From sequence record PQ066597.1: 64,000 bases of DNA, one strand, 5' to 3'. Position numbers and translations under genes: made by a program. The notes beneath the pieces were generated by a model that saw only the letters and a list, made by a program, of their open reading frames with translations, was not told the origin of the DNA and ran no database searches. Shown one piece after another: positions 2,353 through 22,821 of this stretch (within the stretch, counting starts at the first letter, position 1; each line of letters starts with the position of its first letter).

Positions 2353-3006
2353 TTACCTCATTGAGTTAGGGTCTACGTCAGTCGGAATATCTTCCAGACC
2401 ATACGCATATCGTTTTGAATAGATTAACATAAGAATGTCACGAGCGCAATCATGAAGTGAGTTATGTTTTACGAAACCCGGAAGACTCCCGTTAGGAAGG
2501 GGGCAATACGTAACATCGCGATCCATGTTTGCTTCAATTGCGGTTCGTACTTCACGGAAGTTGTTGAACATCACAGGCATAGCAGCAGAAATATCGTCGT
2601 CTGCTAGATCCATAGCATCACAATACCAGCTACGGAACCAAATGATATCCATTTCCCCACGAGTCCAGATATGGGACTTCTTAAACTCGACCCCGGTTTC
2701 CACAAACCAATCTTTGATGTCCATATATCCATCATATAGGGTCCTATCGTCGCTGGATGGCTTCAAGAGAGATTTTGCTTCATCTCCCTGAGATTTCCAC
2801 CATTCCACGGTGGAAGCACTTACACGACGCCCTAGGGCCTTCTGATGTTTCAGATCGAATTTAATTTTCTTTCCGGATTCAACCAGACTTTGAAATGTAG
2901 GTGGATTTTCAATATCCATTTTGAATGGTATCACAGAAAATTCAACTAAGGTAGCTTTTTCTACCGTATTCAAAGTCTCAAAGTCAGTAATATAATCGGT
3001 AACCAT
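2353..3006 (-). CDS. dexA: DexA 3'-5' exonuclease (DEDD)
   Basis: DFETL Exo I motif and HNSLHDCARDIL Exo III motif; T4-like position. Confidence 0.9.
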   Translation of the reverse strand: MVTDYITDFETLNTVEKATLVEFSVIPFKMDIENPPTFQSLVESGKKIKFDLKHQKALGRRVSASTVEWWKSQGDEAKSLLKPSSDDRTLYDGYMDIKDWFVETGVEFKKSHIWTRGEMDIIWFRSWYCDAMDLADDDISAAMPVMFNNFREVRTAIEANMDRDVTYCPLPNGSLPGFVKHNSLHDCARDILMLIYSKRYAYGLEDIPTDVDPNSMR

Positions 3007-3497
3007 TATTTTGTCCCCGAAGAACCAATCCCAGCAGACCCACGAACAGTTTGTGTATCGAAATCATCAACTTGGTTAAACTTGATCTGGTTGAATACAG
3101 GGATAAACACCATCTGACAGAAACGCTCACCCTTCGGAATATGCAAAACCTTGTTGAAGCTCATCGGGTCGTCTTCGTTAACAATATGTTCATTCCGGAC
3201 CTTCACCATGATCTCACCCTGATAGTTTCCATCGATAAGACCAACAGTGTTAGCCAACCGGGTATAGAATTTGAATCCAAGACCAGAACGAGGGAGAACC
3301 ATTGCAGCAATACCAACACCCGGAATACCAGTATCGATCTGACTCATATCAAACCGCATACCAGTGTTAACGATGATATCTTCGCCCGGTTTCAACATAA
3401 TAGCTTCTGGTGTGCGAAGGTCAATAGCTGCATCACCTTCTCGTTGAAAATCAGGACAAACACCATATTCAAAACCACTAATAAAATTCATGTTCAT
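3006..3497 (-). CDS. dut: trimeric dUTPase
   Basis: AAIDL, LPRSG, GLIDGNYQGEI, GERFCQ and RGSAGIGSSG cover motifs I-V. Confidence 0.95.
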   Translation of the reverse strand: MNMNFISGFEYGVCPDFQREGDAAIDLRTPEAIMLKPGEDIIVNTGMRFDMSQIDTGIPGVGIAAMVLPRSGLGFKFYTRLANTVGLIDGNYQGEIMVKVRNEHIVNEDDPMSFNKVLHIPKGERFCQMVFIPVFNQIKFNQVDDFDTQTVRGSAGIGSSGTK

Positions 3498-3498
3498 A

Positions 3499-3741
3499 TT
3501 ATTTTTCCTTTACATATATATCACAAATATTTTCGTAACCGTATGCTGAATATAATGGGCTATGAGAAACATACTCATAACCGTCTAAAAGGGGGCTATG
3601 CTCCGTTTCTTTTATATATCTTATATTCCTCAGACGAACCAATGGTAAATCGTCAGTCAATAAAGCTTCCCGTATGCCACATTTACCAATCTTGGTATTA
3701 TAAACCATAAACCATTTCGTATCCAAAGGATAGTTTAACAT
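3499..3741 (-). CDS. hypothetical protein
   Basis: 80-aa ORF, stop abuts the dUTPase start. Confidence 0.65.
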   Translation of the reverse strand: MLNYPLDTKWFMVYNTKIGKCGIREALLTDDLPLVRLRNIRYIKETEHSPLLDGYEYVSHSPLYSAYGYENICDIYVKEK

Positions 3742-3751
3742 TTCATACGCC

Positions 3752-4123
3752 TTATTTCAATTTTTCAGACAAAAAGGCTGCGAGCTGCTTCCGACTCTCA
3801 CCATATTCAAGTTCATAGTGACTATCCGCTTCATCGTACATCCCATGGTGGTTATCACCATAAGGGGATTTTACAGGATAGCTATCATCACCGGAAAAAT
3901 GATCCCACTCAGCCCAATACAAGGCAAATACCTCGCTCATACAAACAAATTCTGTGTGGTTCTGTTTTTCGAACATATCATCATAGTCTGTACAATAATG
4001 CCAATCTTGGTTACAGAGACCAATTTCAAAGCACCACCATTCAGGAAAAATCCCAACTGATACGTTGTAAAGAACCTCAGAAATGGTCATTTTATAATCT
4101 TGTTCATTTTCAGTATGCATCAC
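3752..4123 (-). CDS. hypothetical protein
   Basis: 123-aa ORF overlapping the primase stop (ATGA-type junction). Confidence 0.7.
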   Translation of the reverse strand: MMHTENEQDYKMTISEVLYNVSVGIFPEWWCFEIGLCNQDWHYCTDYDDMFEKQNHTEFVCMSEVFALYWAEWDHFSGDDSYPVKSPYGDNHHGMYDEADSHYELEYGESRKQLAAFLSEKLK

Positions 4124-5709: not shown

Positions 5710-7272
5710 TTAGTTATCCCAAGGTGCATCGTCTTCTTGTGTTTGTTCTGCCAGAAGGTCATTAAAATCAACTTCGGTTTTGCTCATACGGCGTTTGAAC
5801 ATAGAACTACCCATCGGAGTAGTATCAATTTCATCAACAACTTCCGGAGTAACTTCAACCGGAACAGAAGTAATTCCATCACCACGACGAACAATAACTG
5901 CATCGTCTTGAATATCAGAACGTTCTTCCAGATCCTTTCTTTCGAATACAACAGTATATGGTGTTGTGTCGTCGAGATCCGACCAACGCATTTTAGCTTT
6001 TTCTACAACCATACAGAATTTATTATGGGTGTTGATATCACCATAACGAGATTTAAGTTGCTTGAACAACTGTTGTCCCATCTGCACCAGATCTTCATCT
6101 TCTGAAATTGCCAATACGAAGTCGCAACCATGAAGAAGTGCATAAGAATCCGCAATATCAGCTTTGTCAATCTCAAGGGAACCAGAAGACCCACGGTTGG
6201 TTTGTGCACCAGACCAAGCAACAATTTTCTTCTCGATAGCAAGTCCACGAACTTCTTCTGAAATTGCCTTGATGAAAGAGTAAGAGTTATCAGAGAACTT
6301 CATACGGGACGAAGCCATGATACCTAGGTAGTCTACCATGATAACATCTGGCTTGAAACCCTTTTTCATTTCAAGCTCATCCATCAGGTTTCTGATGTGG
6401 TTTACGTTTGCCCCTGATGTTGGGAACTGCTTAACATAAAGCTTACCAAGCTTTTTACCTGCAACCTTTTTGTTGAACCGGTTCATGAACTCAGATTTTT
6501 GGATAAGTCCACTATCTAGCTCGTCCAGAGTCAGGTCCATTAGGTTTGCGTCAATACGCTTACCTACAGTTTCTTCCGACATCTCAAACGAGACGTACAA
6601 CACGTTTAACCCGAGTTGCATATACTCGGTTGCAAGGTGACACAGACCGATAGACTTACCAACACCAGTACCGGCTAGAATAACGTTAAGCGTACCACGT
6701 TCAACCCCACCCTTGGTGATCCGGTTCAGCATATGATTCAGGAACGGGATCTTATTTGTCTTTTGGTTATATGCTTCCCAACGTTCTTCTGCGCTGTTCA
6801 TATAATCATGACCAACGTCAAAAGTAAAGCCAACAGACATAGCCTTTTTCATGATCTCTTGCATTGCCCCGATATCTTTTATTTTCGGGTCTTGCTCATC
6901 CAGTGGTTTTGCGAAGTTTTCGCGGATCTGGATACACTCAGATAATGCGATATCGATAGCACGTTCTTTACAGAAAGATTCTGTCTCTTCAATCAACCAA
7001 TTTTTATCTTCTGGGATTTGTTCAATTCGAGATACCAAAACTTTAGTCTGGTCATACTCTACTTGACTCATATTCTGTTTGCGTTCCAGCATAACATCCA
7101 GAGCCGCAACCGATGGAGCTTTGTTATGCTTTTTTGCATAGGTATCAATCAAGTCAAATGCAATACGGTAAGGTCCCTTAGAGAAATATTCAGATTTAAG
7201 AAAAGGGTACACCTTACCAAAATACTCGCCGTTGAAAACGAGGTTATTGATAATAATTTGTGAAATACTCAT
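5710..7272 (-). CDS. 41: replicative DnaB-family helicase gp41 with long acidic C-terminal tail
   Basis: GTGVGKS Walker A, IMVDYLG, QTNR, QLKSRYGD; start at ATG 7272 (SD AGGTG). Confidence 0.97.
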   Translation of the reverse strand: MSISQIIINNLVFNGEYFGKVYPFLKSEYFSKGPYRIAFDLIDTYAKKHNKAPSVAALDVMLERKQNMSQVEYDQTKVLVSRIEQIPEDKNWLIEETESFCKERAIDIALSECIQIRENFAKPLDEQDPKIKDIGAMQEIMKKAMSVGFTFDVGHDYMNSAEERWEAYNQKTNKIPFLNHMLNRITKGGVERGTLNVILAGTGVGKSIGLCHLATEYMQLGLNVLYVSFEMSEETVGKRIDANLMDLTLDELDSGLIQKSEFMNRFNKKVAGKKLGKLYVKQFPTSGANVNHIRNLMDELEMKKGFKPDVIMVDYLGIMASSRMKFSDNSYSFIKAISEEVRGLAIEKKIVAWSGAQTNRGSSGSLEIDKADIADSYALLHGCDFVLAISEDEDLVQMGQQLFKQLKSRYGDINTHNKFCMVVEKAKMRWSDLDDTTPYTVVFERKDLEERSDIQDDAVIVRRGDGITSVPVEVTPEVVDEIDTTPMGSSMFKRRMSKTEVDFNDLLAEQTQEDDAPWDN

Positions 7273-7291
7273 TAAAAACACCTGTAAAAAG

Positions 7292-7337
7292 AAAAGTCGC
7301 TTACGTTAAAGATTATCCCATAACGTAAGCGACTTTT
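7292..7337 (-). terminator. 17-bp perfect stem-loop, terminator-like, directly upstream of gene 41
   Basis: AAAAGTCGCTTACGTTA (7292-7308) / TAACGTAAGCGACTTTT (7321-7337), 12-nt loop, T-rich tail on the minus strand. Confidence 0.75.
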
Positions 7338-7344
7338 TAATTAT

Positions 7345-7860
7345 TTATACAACCTTTTTCTGTGAGGAAAAATGAAGAATACCGGTATCATTCAGCACAA
7401 ACGGTACATCGTCCTCGGTGATGATATGCATCCAGAACCTAGCCTTATATTTGTATTGACGAACCCGTTTTACCCGGTTCACAACACCACCATCAGGAGT
7501 ACAATATTGAGCTGCATATAGCGCCTGATAGGGGCTCTTGCGGTCATATAGACTCAGAACTTGATGGTTCTCTGCACACAACCAAGATTTCCCATTAGAC
7601 ATATGGATTTCCCATACGTTGGGGTTGACCGGTTCTGTGAACTCCGTATCGACCATACGTAAGATCGTTGCGTATTTACCGGTTTCCGGTCCCTTTAGAA
7701 GGATCCGGTTACCCTGTTGGATCTCTAGAAGTTGATATAGAGTCCATGTTTGTTCCCTCATGTCCCCATAAATGTCGGGGGCACAAAAGGTAACAAGGGT
7801 ATCCTCTGGAAATCCAGTTACATCATAACAATCATTACGGTCGCAGGTTTGTTCTGTCAT
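7345..7860 (-). CDS. free-standing Hint-domain (intein-like) protein lacking canonical splicing residues
   Basis: GFPEDTLV (block A-like), VWEIHMSNGKSWLCAENHQVL (block B-like), FWMHIITEDDVPFVLNDTGILHF (block F/G-like); ATG 2 nt after the gene 40 stop. Confidence 0.7.
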   Translation of the reverse strand: MTEQTCDRNDCYDVTGFPEDTLVTFCAPDIYGDMREQTWTLYQLLEIQQGNRILLKGPETGKYATILRMVDTEFTEPVNPNVWEIHMSNGKSWLCAENHQVLSLYDRKSPYQALYAAQYCTPDGGVVNRVKRVRQYKYKARFWMHIITEDDVPFVLNDTGILHFSSQKKVV

Positions 7861-7861
7861 T

Positions 7862-8152
7862 TTATTTCCTTTTGAAAAGATCAAGAAAACGCCCAAAGAA
7901 AGATTTTTCAATCTCAACATTGGTTTGGTTATACATAGCTTGTACTGCATTTTTAACATGTGGATATAGTTCTTCCTTCATGTCTTCGTGTGGAGTACTC
8001 CAATCTAATACAACCTTCCCATCATGATACTGTATATCGTTGATAAACACAAGAAAATTCTCACTATCAATCCGGATAACCAATTCAGTTTGTACATTCT
8101 TTAATGCGTCATTGATTACATCTTTATAGGTATCTTCGTTTATTTCTTCCAT
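7862..8152 (-). CDS. 40: head vertex assembly chaperone gp40
   Basis: NVQTELVI...DGKVVLDW...ELYPHV matches T4 gp40; lies between uvsX and 41. Confidence 0.85.
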   Translation of the reverse strand: MEEINEDTYKDVINDALKNVQTELVIRIDSENFLVFINDIQYHDGKVVLDWSTPHEDMKEELYPHVKNAVQAMYNQTNVEIEKSFFGRFLDLFKRK

Positions 8153-8193
8153 ATATTACCTGTAAGAAATAGACCTAGTTTCCTAGGTCATTG

Positions 8194-8631: not shown

Positions 8632-8964
8632 TTAATTCCCATACGAACTAATTGTATAATTTCCCTCGAAATTTTCAATAACATTATATCCTAAAGACAT
8701 CAATCGATTATTAGATATCTCGACTATTTTTGAATATACATATGATACAGTGTGGTTACATAGGTAAGGATTAAAATTCGCTTCGTGGTTGTGGATGATA
8801 TTTACGTAATCATCCATGTTCAGTGTTATTCCACCACCACAAACAACAAGCTCATTGATTATAGACCGCAAAACATGACTAGACTCAACGTCGAAATCGT
8901 GGTTTGTATATTTTATTTCTTTTCTAACTTCGTCGGCGGTAGTTTTTTCTGTTACAATTAACAT
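8632..8964 (-). CDS. hypothetical protein
   Basis: 110-aa ORF in the operon. Confidence 0.7.
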   Translation of the reverse strand: MLIVTEKTTADEVRKEIKYTNHDFDVESSHVLRSIINELVVCGGGITLNMDDYVNIIHNHEANFNPYLCNHTVSYVYSKIVEISNNRLMSLGYNVIENFEGNYTISSYGN

Positions 8965-10616: not shown

Positions 10617-11792
10617 TTAACCAAACAAGTCATCAAGAGAAAAATTTGCAGGACTTTCTTGTTTCCACCCAATAGCATCGCAGATATTACCAAGCGGCTT
10701 TTGGAAGTGTTTACAATACATACCAACGAAATCAATATCTTTTTCCGGATTAATTCCGAATTCGTCTGGGATCTTATCGCCAGAAGGCCAAGCAATAGTT
10801 TCAATATGATATTTATTCGGAACCTTCAACATCGCATACTGAATTTTTTCACCAGAACGGATTGGGTCAACATAGGATACTGATTTCAACTGATCACAAA
10901 TCTTGTTGTAGTTAATAGCTGCTTTAACGTGACCGGGACAACCAGATTTATGATTGAAAAATTCGTCTGAGTTCTTTTCAATATTATTTGCGCTACTTAC
11001 TTGTGCAATCTTACGATAATCCTGTTTTGGATATTCACCCTTTACCTTGTCAACGTGAGCATGGAGATTTGTTTCATTCTCAGTCAAAATGATGTCAATC
11101 GCTTTTTCAAGGCATTCTGACGCAAAAGGTGGTGTACTGCTACGGCGTGTCTCGATACCCATAATCTTGAGCTTTGGAACTACATTACCATGAGAGTCTA
11201 GTTTTCTCTTACCTTCGTTATCCCACACAGATAGAGCATATCGTTTCTTAGCGGTCCAGAACCCACGAGTTGCGATTACTTCACGGTCCATGAACAATTT
11301 ATGGTCGAAATAGTTCATGTAATCTTTCAGTTCGCGATAACATTCATCGATATATGGCTCGACCATATTCTTTGCGAACTTATCAAGCATATCAACCCAT
11401 TTAATAGGTTCTACATCCTCAATCTTAACGCCTTTCTTGTCTGCCATCATTTTAACGAAGTTTTCAACACAAACATATTGAGAGTCGGTATCACAATAGA
11501 TAACGTAATCTACGTCTTCTGTGTTACACAGCTTATTGAAATACTCGTTCGTTTTTCTGGCAATCCATTTAATGGATAACTGACCACCCATCGTAATTGA
11601 TTCAGCCATTCGTAGATCATAATAACGACCCACAGGATGACCCAAAGACCCATAAAGAGAGTTGATCAATACCTTTTTTGCTTGTTGGGTTACGTTACAT
11701 ACTTTCTCATATTTCCGACAGTCGGAGATGAGCTTTTTCAGCTCATCGTCTGTCATATTTTCCAATTGTTCATCGGTATAATCTAGATTCAT
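10617..11792 (-). CDS. 43B: family B DNA polymerase, C-terminal subunit (gp43B)
   Basis: KVLINSLYG (motif B), YCDTDS (motif C), KKRYA, C-terminal clamp motif SLDDLFG; own SD AAGAGGA. Confidence 0.95.
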   Translation of the reverse strand: MNLDYTDEQLENMTDDELKKLISDCRKYEKVCNVTQQAKKVLINSLYGSLGHPVGRYYDLRMAESITMGGQLSIKWIARKTNEYFNKLCNTEDVDYVIYCDTDSQYVCVENFVKMMADKKGVKIEDVEPIKWVDMLDKFAKNMVEPYIDECYRELKDYMNYFDHKLFMDREVIATRGFWTAKKRYALSVWDNEGKRKLDSHGNVVPKLKIMGIETRRSSTPPFASECLEKAIDIILTENETNLHAHVDKVKGEYPKQDYRKIAQVSSANNIEKNSDEFFNHKSGCPGHVKAAINYNKICDQLKSVSYVDPIRSGEKIQYAMLKVPNKYHIETIAWPSGDKIPDEFGINPEKDIDFVGMYCKHFQKPLGNICDAIGWKQESPANFSLDDLFG

Positions 11793-13312
11793 TTATCATT
11801 CCTCTTTGCCAAGATTGCAGCAGCTCTAGTTGCAAGGGCATCAGCTTTAAACTCTTCGGTCTTGGCTTGTTTCCGTTGGACAAACACCTTCTCAACTTCA
11901 ATAGGAAGGAAACCGCGTTTGTCATTTCGATAACGAACACCATTTGGGGCGACGGAATATTTACCTTCATGAGGAACATCAAACGTCTTGTTAACCAAAC
12001 CCATACCTTCAATATCAGGAACCATACGGTCTTTAACCAAGATACGAGGGAAATCAACCTGATCAACCAAAGTCTCGGGAGAGATATTCTTACCCATGAT
12101 TTCGTGTGGATAAAGGGAAGTCAAGTCAAACGAAATAAGCCACTCATACAACCCCGGAATCGGGTCCTTAACATATGCGCCAGCGAACTTAGACCGTTGG
12201 GCATGTTTGTTTTCAGGGATAATTACGTTATTGGCAAGGAGGCTGTTATAAATGATAGCATCCCAAGTTTTCAACGGACTGAATACGTCTGGTGCGTTGA
12301 TACTCGCATAATAGGATACAGACGCAATCAGGAATATCAAACTCAATGTTTCTTCCAGTCGTTTGATAATTTCAACGTCTCGAATAGAGTAATCGATATA
12401 AGTCTGTGGATTCTTTTCAGCAAACATCAAGTAGGTTTTATAAGTCATTTCGACTTTATTTGTTTTAAGTTCTGCTTCCGCAATCGTATCTAGTTTATAG
12501 TTTGGTCGTGTGGTAAAAGTAAACTTCTTATATGCTGCCATGAAGTCAACACAGTTTACACCTTGGATAGTGTAGGTGGTGTAATCTTCGTCGTTGTCAT
12601 CCTTTTGGGTGATCTCTGTAGTCTCACCAAATGGACTCAGTTTATGGATAAATTTTTCACCAAGGACTTTTTTAATACGACCCATGATATAGGGAATATC
12701 AAAAAACTCACTATTCCACCCACTAAGATAATGGGGTGTATTCGTACAGAAAAAGTGCATGAACTTAATCAGGATTTCTTTTTCAGACCCACACAAAACA
12801 TATTCAACGTCGTCAAGAACCTTCTTATCCAGAATAGATTTACATGCATCCCATTCACGAATAGTCCAGATATAATATTTTTTTGATTTGGTACTATAGA
12901 TCTGAATGGTATCTATTTCATACTTCGTTTCTTCTGCTTGTGGGAAAGGTCCATCAGTTGGGACCTCGATATCCAAAAACATAATATCAAGATATGTATA
13001 ATCATAATACACATTAGAGCCGTAAGTATCAGAGATATATTGGAATGTGTAATTATCCATACCCAATACGTCTTTTCCCATAGACTGCATATCTTTAAAC
13101 CATTTCCTAGCTTCGCTAACAGAATCTAGTTTCTTAGGCAAACAACGCTTACCGAAAATATCCCGATATGGAGTATCAATATGGTCACCAACATGACGAT
13201 ACATAGTTGGTTCATATCTAACCTTTCGGATCTTATCATTACCGTTATCATCGAAATATCGGTCGTAAATGGTATTTCCATCTAGCCAAACACTTGTATA
13301 AAAATTCATCAC
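11789..13312 (-). CDS. 43A: family B DNA polymerase, N-terminal subunit (gp43A)
   Basis: LDIEV (Exo I), WNSEFFDIPY (Exo II), YSIRDV (Exo III), SFDLTSLYP (motif A); ends in the fingers helix. Confidence 0.95.
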   Translation of the reverse strand: MMNFYTSVWLDGNTIYDRYFDDNGNDKIRKVRYEPTMYRHVGDHIDTPYRDIFGKRCLPKKLDSVSEARKWFKDMQSMGKDVLGMDNYTFQYISDTYGSNVYYDYTYLDIMFLDIEVPTDGPFPQAEETKYEIDTIQIYSTKSKKYYIWTIREWDACKSILDKKVLDDVEYVLCGSEKEILIKFMHFFCTNTPHYLSGWNSEFFDIPYIMGRIKKVLGEKFIHKLSPFGETTEITQKDDNDEDYTTYTIQGVNCVDFMAAYKKFTFTTRPNYKLDTIAEAELKTNKVEMTYKTYLMFAEKNPQTYIDYSIRDVEIIKRLEETLSLIFLIASVSYYASINAPDVFSPLKTWDAIIYNSLLANNVIIPENKHAQRSKFAGAYVKDPIPGLYEWLISFDLTSLYPHEIMGKNISPETLVDQVDFPRILVKDRMVPDIEGMGLVNKTFDVPHEGKYSVAPNGVRYRNDKRGFLPIEVEKVFVQRKQAKTEEFKADALATRAAAILAKRNDK

Positions 13313-13328
13313 ATAATCCTCTTATAGA

Positions 13329-21110: not shown

Positions 21111-22565
21111 TTATTTTGATTTACGACGGGTGGAAATCCAATCTGAAACCAAAGCAATATCGGTTGGCTCCAAGACAGATAATTTACGTCCTATCTGCTT
21201 CTGATAATATGACAATGCTGATTGCTCTTTATTATCCAGACCAAATATAGATTTAAAACTCTCTTTCCTAGCTCTTGGGGTAGTTTCTTTCTTTCTGGGC
21301 TTTCTTTCCTTTTCTGCGAAAATCATCAATGAACAATCGATATTTGCGTCTGGAAGATACTTATTCTTGAGATATTCAGCAACCCTCATATCAGGAACAA
21401 TAAGCCTAACCGGAGACATACTTTTATTATTTCGAATGTCAGTTCTCAAACAAAGTTGGAAAGCTGGCTCTAGATATTTCGAAACCAAGAATGCGTTTGT
21501 CAGATGGTCTACATCCAGACCCTGATTATAACTAAGAGACTTCAACAACTCCAACTGCCATGGGCTTGGGTTATAAGAGAATAACGCAACCGCAGTTGAA
21601 AAGTTCATATAATTGTTCATCCCATGTGGATTATATGGGATCTTAGTCCCGCCATTCAATGGACCTCTATATGAGTTTGTTGTGTATATGTAGTTAACCG
21701 GACCAACCACATTATAAACAATATCTTTTACTTTATTGTATACGGTTTCACCACCAATTTCTATATCGGATGCATATCGAGACCAATTCCCGTCATACAT
21801 AGGTATAATCTCAATTCGTTGAGTGTTCTTGTAGTTTCTGAAATCCAAATCGGAAACCAAAGGACTTTCTACAAATTCCCAACCAGCATATTCTTTAAGA
21901 ACAACACCCGTAAATGTTTCTCGAAAATTTGCACAAGCAATTGTGATTTTTGTAAACAATTCCCATGATTGGGTGCTCATATCTTCAACAAAATAAGCAC
22001 AGCTATCCTTAATAATTACTGGGATGTCAGTTAATAGTGCTTTAACCAAAGGGAATACGCTATTAGACACGACGTCTAGGTTATGCATACCATCCATAGC
22101 AATTTCTTCAAGAGTCTTTCTATGCTTTTCCACGACGGTCATACGACCATTACTAGCAATGTCACAGTATCTTGAAACAACGTCGATGTTTGTCTTGAAT
22201 TGAACCTGACGAAGATCGACCATATCAGGAACTTCATCTATATAAAGCTCATGACCTTCAAATAAATCAAAATGAGGAAAGTTCATTAATGCCGAATGGG
22301 TAATAAAAATAACCCGATACTTCCCAATAGATTCCTTTATAGAATCATATACCGATGCCCGTTTTTTAATATTGTCAGTATCTAAGATGATTGCGTTATC
22401 ATAACCAAGGGTCATTGTAAAGAAATCATAAGATTGCTTAGATAACTGACAGGAAATTGATGCAATAATGGTCGGTTTTCGACTCCGACCAACATGTTTT
22501 AGAATTGCTTTTGTTTTTCCACTACCGGGGACCGATGTCAAAATCTCAACGTTTAGCGATCCCAT
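21111..22565 (-). CDS. SF2/DEAD-like helicase or P-loop NTPase of unknown role
   Basis: SVPGSGKT Walker A, FITHSAL, LYIDEVP Walker B, QLCLRTDIR motif VI-like; ATG 22565 with SD GGAG. Confidence 0.75.
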   Translation of the reverse strand: MGSLNVEILTSVPGSGKTKAILKHVGRSRKPTIIASISCQLSKQSYDFFTMTLGYDNAIILDTDNIKKRASVYDSIKESIGKYRVIFITHSALMNFPHFDLFEGHELYIDEVPDMVDLRQVQFKTNIDVVSRYCDIASNGRMTVVEKHRKTLEEIAMDGMHNLDVVSNSVFPLVKALLTDIPVIIKDSCAYFVEDMSTQSWELFTKITIACANFRETFTGVVLKEYAGWEFVESPLVSDLDFRNYKNTQRIEIIPMYDGNWSRYASDIEIGGETVYNKVKDIVYNVVGPVNYIYTTNSYRGPLNGGTKIPYNPHGMNNYMNFSTAVALFSYNPSPWQLELLKSLSYNQGLDVDHLTNAFLVSKYLEPAFQLCLRTDIRNNKSMSPVRLIVPDMRVAEYLKNKYLPDANIDCSLMIFAEKERKPRKKETTPRARKESFKSIFGLDNKEQSALSYYQKQIGRKLSVLEPTDIALVSDWISTRRKSK

Positions 22566-22821
22566 TATCAACTCCAAAAGACTCCGCACCATATACCTCA
22601 AGAATATACCCAACCGCAATTTCGCGTAATTTGTTCTTGTGGATATTTCCAATATGTGCAGTTTCTTTTGCCATGAAGTTAACAATAACGTCTAGGAATT
22701 TTTCAGTAACAATATTTTTATTTTCGATCCGAACTTCAACACTCTCAATAATGTGTCGCTTGCACAAGTTCTGGATACTAATATAATTTTCACGAGTCAA
22801 TTTCATTTTGCTTTCCATCAT
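22546..22821 (-). CDS. small conserved protein, possibly gp55.2-like
   Basis: 91-aa ORF overlapping neighbours; family call rests on position only. Confidence 0.6.
   Translation of the reverse strand: MMESKMKLTRENYISIQNLCKRHIIESVEVRIENKNIVTEKFLDVIVNFMAKETAHIGNIHKNKLREIAVGYILEVYGAESFGVDNGIAKR

Follow-up and report, generated by a model that had tools for sequence, protein, structure and literature searches.

In a T4-like phage of Aeromonas that belongs to the CC2 group (Straboviridae, Emmerichvirinae, Ceceduovirus), an intact gene between genes 40 and 41 encodes a 171-residue protein that is predicted to consist of a single, free-standing Hint domain. Profile comparisons and structure predictions give the Hint fold good support, and the residues at the former active site argue against any canonical splicing activity. 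We think it probable that an intein gave rise to this protein, which would now be an ordinary phage protein standing on its own and serve as a noncatalytic binding or adaptor module. Our confidence in the identity of the protein is high, whereas the mechanism proposed for it is put forward with low confidence. Inteins are usually regarded as selfish elements, with splicing and decay as their only two fates. In full-text literature searches no paper mentioning the 171-residue protein was found.

The Gene and Its Setting

The window analysed here is a stretch of 64,000 nucleotides from sequence record PQ066597.1. The Hint gene occupies positions 7345..7860 on the minus strand, with its ATG at 7860 and its stop codon at 7345–7347. 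Its product matches PHROG 16672, a group with no annotated function, over the full length (E 2.1e-104, positions 1–171 of 171), and is present with 100% identity in 14 GenBank records, among them CC2, P19, AP1, and vB_AdhaM_G2. The upstream neighbour is gene 40 (7862..8152, minus strand; Pfam Phage_head_chap, E 1e-17), and the downstream neighbour is gene 41 (5710..7272), which encodes the DnaB-type helicase gp41.

The preliminary description of this DNA had remarked on the lack of a host extein, and the surroundings of the domain bear this out. Only 15 residues precede Gly16 and only 7 follow Phe164, the gene has its own SD sequence and ATG, and gp40 and gp41 are both complete proteins. The 15-residue N-terminal leader, MTEQTCDRNDCYDVT (7816..7860, minus strand), stands in the place of an N-extein; its residues D7, N9, and D13 are moderately conserved in the family. 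The family proteins are mildly acidic (pI 5.2–6.2), a property that does not suggest DNA binding.

The layout of the gene 40 junction (7862..7875, minus strand) points to coupling, as had been claimed earlier: the SD sequence AAGGA lies within the end of gene 40, and 1 nt separates the TAA at 7862–7864 from the ATG at 7860. In all eight lineages that we compared, the Hint gene starts 1–5 nt past the stop codon of gene 40, behind an SD sequence, and translation of the two genes thus appears to be coupled. A fusion with gp40 by read-through or programmed frameshifting is ruled out because the Hint gene does not keep one frame with respect to gene 40 across the lineages. Downstream, the Hint gene is followed by an intrinsic-terminator-like hairpin (7286..7337, minus strand), with a 17-bp stem and then CTTTTT. 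A GC-rich hairpin precedes gene 41 in 8/8 lineages; its sequence differs from one to the next, and a T run follows it in most. Given the coupling to gene 40 and the strong terminator hairpin, the Hint gene would be transcriptionally separate from gene 41 and, to judge by these signals, belongs to the expression unit of gene 40. Between an upstream 144-residue ORF and gene 40, at 8172–8189, lies a further hairpin, a perfect 7-bp palindrome that resembles a terminator on either strand, so that gene 40 and the Hint gene are bracketed by two hairpins.

The late promoter that had been proposed for this unit was not found: neither gene 40 nor the Hint gene is preceded by a TATAAATA late-promoter motif. 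The only exact copy nearby (7342–7349, minus strand) overlaps the Hint stop codon and points towards gene 41, and the number of copies within the window is at chance level. That copy is kept in L013, which forms the closest pair with the window, and is missing from more distant lineages. A sigma-70-like promoter (TTAAAA, 17 nt, TG-GATAAT) lies within the terminator hairpin and likewise faces gene 41; it and the TATAAATA copy together fall in 7312–7349 (minus strand).

Two features of the neighbouring genes may be recorded here. The gp41 helicase carries an extension of about 80 residues past its helicase profile match (5713–5964, minus strand). The tip of this extension is acidic and contains Trp, reading DDAPWDN in the window and DDDIPWD in phage 65; we take it to resemble the C-terminal tip of SSB, DDDIPF. 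By tblastn, the tail and the Hint gene are found in an identical set of 21 phage records, and the tail has 79.5–100% identity among the CC2-like phages. On the other side of gene 40, a 110-residue ORF (8632–8964, minus strand) lies between uvsX and the 144-residue ORF; the CC2 reference lacks it and has a single ORF in this interval. The C-terminal end of the 110-residue ORF gives a weak NUMOD4-like match (E 0.08).

Evidence for a Hint Fold

Searches with the single 171-residue sequence are uninformative. Pfam gave no match at E ≤ 1, Hint models included, and NCBIfam, PADLOC, and a phmmer search of PDB sequences gave nothing significant. An exhaustive search of 1.84 billion representatives with the family HMM, on the other hand, reached two multi-intein proteins outside the family (E 4.5e-5 and 7.5e-4). 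The matches sit exactly on intein block B, where the family reads vyeitlengkkllccenHkvl and the intein reads VYEITLDNGKVFKCTENHKFL. Further long matches in this search were to Ig-repeat proteins and were discarded as spurious. When the family profile was run against PDB sequences, the top matches were the gp41-1 intein (E 0.09) and a DnaE intein (E 0.34), neither significant alone but both in line with the other matches. Block B is the strongest sequence tie to inteins and the segment under the tightest constraint.

The resemblance to Hint domains, which had been claimed from motifs alone, is upheld by comparison of profiles. The eight-member family alignment was compared by hhalign with four mini-inteins cut from the multi-intein proteins, and the match (E 1.3e-6, probability 90.6%) extends over residues 17–165 of the query and 2–143 of the template. 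Control templates, one reversed and eight with shuffled columns, gave E values of 0.3–0.8. Blocks A, B, F, and G run in order at mini-intein spacing. Conversely, when the intein profile was searched against the 393 six-frame ORFs of the window, the Hint gene ranked best (E 2.3e-4).

No second intein or Hint sequence was found among the 393 ORFs. A 91-residue ORF at 22546–22821 (minus strand) matched the N-terminal part of the mini-intein profile with E 0.009; it is not Hint-like, and the match was judged to be due to chance. The DNA polymerase gene 43 (10617–13321, minus strand) is split, with no intein, into 43A and 43B. The latter spans 10617..11792 (391 residues), and 43A lies directly upstream, the stop and start codons overlapping. 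Gene 43 is split likewise in CC2, in phage 65, and in metagenomic relatives.

AlphaFold2 was run first with five sequences and again with eight, after the exhaustive search had added two distant members. The first model had a pLDDT of 55, and its top 22 Foldseek matches were all inteins or BIL domains. With eight sequences the pLDDT rose to 88.7 and the pTM to 0.83, and the Hint horseshoe β fold, for which a check by AlphaFold and Foldseek had been proposed, is indeed predicted. The best 50 PDB matches of this model are all inteins, BIL domains, or Hedgehog Hint domains; the best E value is 1.2e-5, 28 of the 50 have E ≤ 1e-3, and the target-normalised TM score reaches 0.76 (VidaL intein). The CC2 protein also has an independent model in BFVD, which superposes on the AlphaFold2 model with a TM score of 0.87. 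The remaining viral matches in BFVD are intein-bearing polymerases, terminases, helicases, and reductases, and the database also holds a few short Hint-fold viral proteins of 143–172 residues. The structural matches include 9hth, a fused version of the PolB1 intein of Aes123, which is split in nature; from its name we take Aes123 to be an Aeromonas phage.

Catalytic Positions

The catalytic positions were mapped by global hhalign alignment and by the family columns, over eight lineages. The three motifs of the preliminary description are present, in the order given there. In the block A equivalent, GFPEDTLV (7792..7815, minus strand), an invariant Gly16 occupies position 1, the site of the canonical Cys/Ser nucleophile, in 8/8 lineages. 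In the block B equivalent, EIHMSNGKSWLCAENHQVL (7555..7611, minus strand), Ala96 replaces the block B Thr, a position that reads Ala, Ala, Cys, Cys, Cys, Cys, Pro, and Ser across the family; His99 is found in 8/8. Blocks F and G are represented by HIITEDDVPFVLNDTGILHF (7369..7428, minus strand), where His145 takes the place of the block F Asp (position 4; His or Asn in the family) and Phe164 that of the terminal Asn (Phe, Phe, Val, Tyr, Val, Gly, Gly, and Ala). The invariant Thr148 and the penultimate His163, the latter again in 8/8, fall inside this segment. The +1 residue, canonically Cys, Ser, or Thr, is Ser in six of the eight lineages.

No cysteine is conserved in the family, and one member has none at all. 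The signature of class 3 inteins, Trp-Cys-Thr (Trp in block B, Cys at position 4 of block F, Thr in block G), is absent from the family. Among the canonical splicing residues only the two histidines are invariant; apart from Gly16, the other invariant residues of the protein are Met1, Gly32, Glu73, Gly124, and Thr148. With the splicing residues replaced and only His99 and His163 invariant, canonical splicing (classes 1–3) appears to be excluded for the family, as does autoprocessing of the Cys1 type. The alignment thus agrees with the substitutions read earlier from one sequence: the nucleophile has become Gly, the block B Thr has become Ala, and the terminal Asn has become Phe, with both histidines kept. 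It agrees as well with the claim that the protein does not splice, since each canonical route would be closed by loss of residues.

Conservation and Selection

The family is small, comprising 21 phage records, all from Aeromonas phages, and four 50% clusters among the 1.84 billion representatives. A second, word-indexed protein search with the family alignment revealed no new members. The lineages are the CC2-like phages, a Logan contig at 80% identity, Aswh_1/ZPAH1 at 62%, a contig at 54%, phage 65 and a relative of it at 33–36%, and two metagenomic lineages at 29% and 21%. The DNA was recovered for all eight, and in each the ORF is intact between the Phage_head_chap and DnaB_C helicase genes. 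The possibility that these relatives are assembly duplicates of one genome is excluded by the divergence of the flanking genes.

The closest pair, the window and L013, has a pairwise dN/dS of 0.12 (dS 1.18), and phage 65 and its relative have one of about 0.09, values indicative of strong purifying selection on the Hint gene. A survey of the 40–41 interval and of dN/dS had been suggested, and its outcome (an intact ORF in the same slot in 8/8 lineages, and the ratio of 0.12) sustains the earlier view that the intact ORF reflects selection. No genuinely frameshifted copy was found in the 21 phage records. An "81%" copy in AsSzw2 (L011, MN871441), with an apparent insert of 40 codons, proved to be an artefact of ambiguous bases in the record; positions 2700–3900 of MN871441 contain many of these, across gene 40, the Hint gene, and gene 41. 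The preliminary description had left a choice between a relic of an intein and a domesticated Hint fold. Conservation and dN/dS favour the domesticated fold and speak against a decaying relic.

The comparison with L013 is instructive. The flanking genes are 95–100% identical in DNA, and the proteins gp40, gp41, and UvsX are 97%, 96%, and 100% identical. Within the Hint gene the DNA identity falls to 43–92% and the protein identity to 80%. Most of the replacements lie in a variable surface patch encoded by codons 24–66 (7663..7791, minus strand), where dN is 0.56 and dS 2.3. Codons 67–120, which include block B, show 3 nonsynonymous and 23 synonymous differences (dN 0.02, dS 2.2), a dN/dS of about 0.01 in which the synonymous sites are saturated. 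On these figures the block B half is extremely constrained and the patch is free to vary. A drop in identity inside near-identical flanks, together with this codon pattern, looks like the exchange of an old allele through recombination.

L013 differs from the window at gene 41 as well. Just past this gene it carries an extra gene of 313 codons (6189–7130) with CapR/DUF723 domains, which we suspect to be a free-standing homing endonuclease. The 3' end of gene 41 in L013 (5821–6060) has only 72–82% DNA identity and looks like a co-conversion tract.

Relationship to Known Hint Proteins

The phage protein falls within the Hint superfamily, yet it lacks the properties that define inteins, BIL and Hog domains, and the HO/WHO proteins. 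With mini-inteins such as the gp41-1 intein (6qaz), VidaL (6vgv), and Npu DnaE (4kl5) it shares the predicted fold, the size, the order and spacing of the blocks, and the block B and penultimate histidines. Block B of the gp41-1 intein, SYKITLEDGKEIICSEEH, is close to the family consensus vyeitlengkkllccenH. In contrast to mini-inteins, the protein has no host into which it is inserted, no nucleophile at position 1, no terminal Asn, no block B Thr, and no block F Asp, and it is inherited vertically like an ordinary gene.

BIL domains and the Hint modules of Hedgehog/Hog proteins are Hint domains outside classical splicing, and BIL domains (6tmm, 2lwy) are the top structural matches to the phage protein. 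BIL and Hog domains belong to larger proteins and retain Cys1 and autoprocessing, whereas the phage protein is a Hint domain alone, with neither Cys1 nor an additional domain. Two annotations of stand-alone Hint proteins, in Listeria LIS04 and Salicola SCTP-2, were considered as parallels and set aside; they are pieces of larger intein-bearing genes or lie inside them.

To our knowledge, yeast HO is the only well-known parallel, and it relies on its endonuclease domain. HO and WHO are eukaryotic proteins in which a LAGLIDADG endonuclease domain interrupts the Hint-like domain and provides the function. They are free-standing, of intein-like descent, and do not splice; HO is domesticated, and WHO genes lie beside the host gene rather than inside it (PMC7282813). 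The Hint protein differs from them in that no endonuclease match, or any other domain, is found in its 171 residues. Only 43 residues separate its block B His from block F, a distance of mini-intein size.

Origin and Function

In the explanation that we favour, the Hint protein would neither splice nor cleave. Instead, the relic active-site cleft, in which Gly16, His99, and His163 are retained, would clamp a peptide, either the leader and tail of the protein itself or part of a partner protein, and residues 24–66 would form the surface that faces this partner. The structure behind this explanation is a prediction, made by AlphaFold2 from 8 sequences only. Because the protein is made together with gp40, as the coupling and the terminator suggest, the partner would most likely belong to the uvsX-40-41 replication and recombination set or to the set that functions in head initiation. 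The fixed place beside gene 41 may reflect a single insertion that has simply been inherited rather than a functional linkage. A role as a substitute for the gp59 helicase loader was considered and is ruled out because CC2 keeps a gp59 homologue.

Descent from a helicase intein, one of the possibilities raised in the preliminary description, is only a candidate origin: the match to the gp41-1 intein is weak (E 0.09) and restricted to block B, both gp40 and gp41 are complete, and the flanks of 15 and 7 residues are too short to be recognisable as remnants of exteins. Nor do the multi-intein proteins P0011 and P0012 count as evidence for a helicase origin; their hosts have no Pfam domain and are uninformative.

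A bolder reading, possible though in our estimate unlikely, is that the protein is the first domesticated viral mini-intein, with a relic cleft that acts in trans. The target would be a helicase of the DnaB family or an intein-bearing protein of a competitor, and the patch at codons 24–66 would set the specificity. The candidate helicases are the phage gp41, reached through its clade-specific C-terminal tail, and the DnaB of the host.

The main rival of the adaptor explanation holds that chemistry has been kept or gained. Retention of the two histidines, Thr148, and Glu73 could equally be read as a sign of residual or new chemistry: the His pair, with Thr148 and/or Glu73, might cleave the protein's own leader or tail, or might carry out a new reaction in trans, such as cleavage of a peptide bond or some metal-dependent activity. 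The invariant residues Gly16, His99, Thr148, and His163 do cluster at former catalytic positions, and the constraint on the block B half is extreme. However, there is no conserved nucleophile at either junction, position 1 being Gly in 8/8 and the +1 residue Ser in only 6/8, and the family has neither a conserved Cys nor the Trp-Cys-Thr signature of class 3. We consider residual or new chemistry rather improbable.

Somewhat more doubtful is a role as an antagonist or decoy, in which the protein would bind the intein halves or intein-bearing proteins of competitors or, through a surface inherited from a helicase intein, the host DnaB or the phage gp41. An action on the split inteins of competing phages had been suggested in the preliminary description, as had a putative chaperone role. 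It is true that the gp41-1 helicase intein is the best sequence match in the PDB and that the Hint gene adjoins gene 41. The variation in codons 24–66 looks like an exchange of alleles between otherwise near-identical phages, and the clade-specific C-terminal tail of gp41 occurs in exactly the 21 phage records that contain the Hint gene. Yet the gp41-1 match is nonsignificant and does not extend beyond block B, a segment that many inteins have in similar form. The Hint gene and the gp41 tail occur together within a single clade, an association confounded by phylogeny; moreover, the tail varies (79.5–100% identity) where the Hint protein is 100% identical. The window, finally, holds no other intein or Hint sequence.

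It is most improbable that the gene is a decaying intein relic with no function of its own. All splicing residues but the two histidines have indeed been lost, and a precedent exists in Arth_1007 of Arthrobacter sp. FB24, a splicing-inactive intein pseudogene of phage origin that has no real host protein, only 66 residues of exteins (PMC3196547). Arth_1007, however, exists as one copy that is in decay and no longer has even its block B His (PMC3196547), whereas the Hint family keeps both histidines and experiences strong purifying selection across many lineages. The ORF and the context of its start are conserved in eight lineages at 21–80% identity, dN/dS is 0.12 overall and close to 0.01 (at saturated dS) in codons 67–120, and the one irregular record among the 21 owes its irregularity to ambiguous bases. 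Equally improbable is the view that the motifs arose by chance and that a shallow alignment misled the fold prediction, as the empty Pfam, NCBIfam, and single-sequence PDB searches and the poor five-sequence model might suggest, since the profile evidence is independent of AlphaFold2, even the model with pLDDT 55 retrieved inteins or BIL domains as its top 22 matches, and the BFVD model agrees.

A stand-alone Hint domain that has no nucleophile and is nevertheless under strong purifying selection would indicate that phages can recruit this fold for a role other than splicing. The protein is a compact and tractable case in which to learn what a Hint scaffold and two conserved histidines can do besides splicing. 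Its study may also uncover a factor that assists T4-type replication or head initiation in the phages of Aeromonas.
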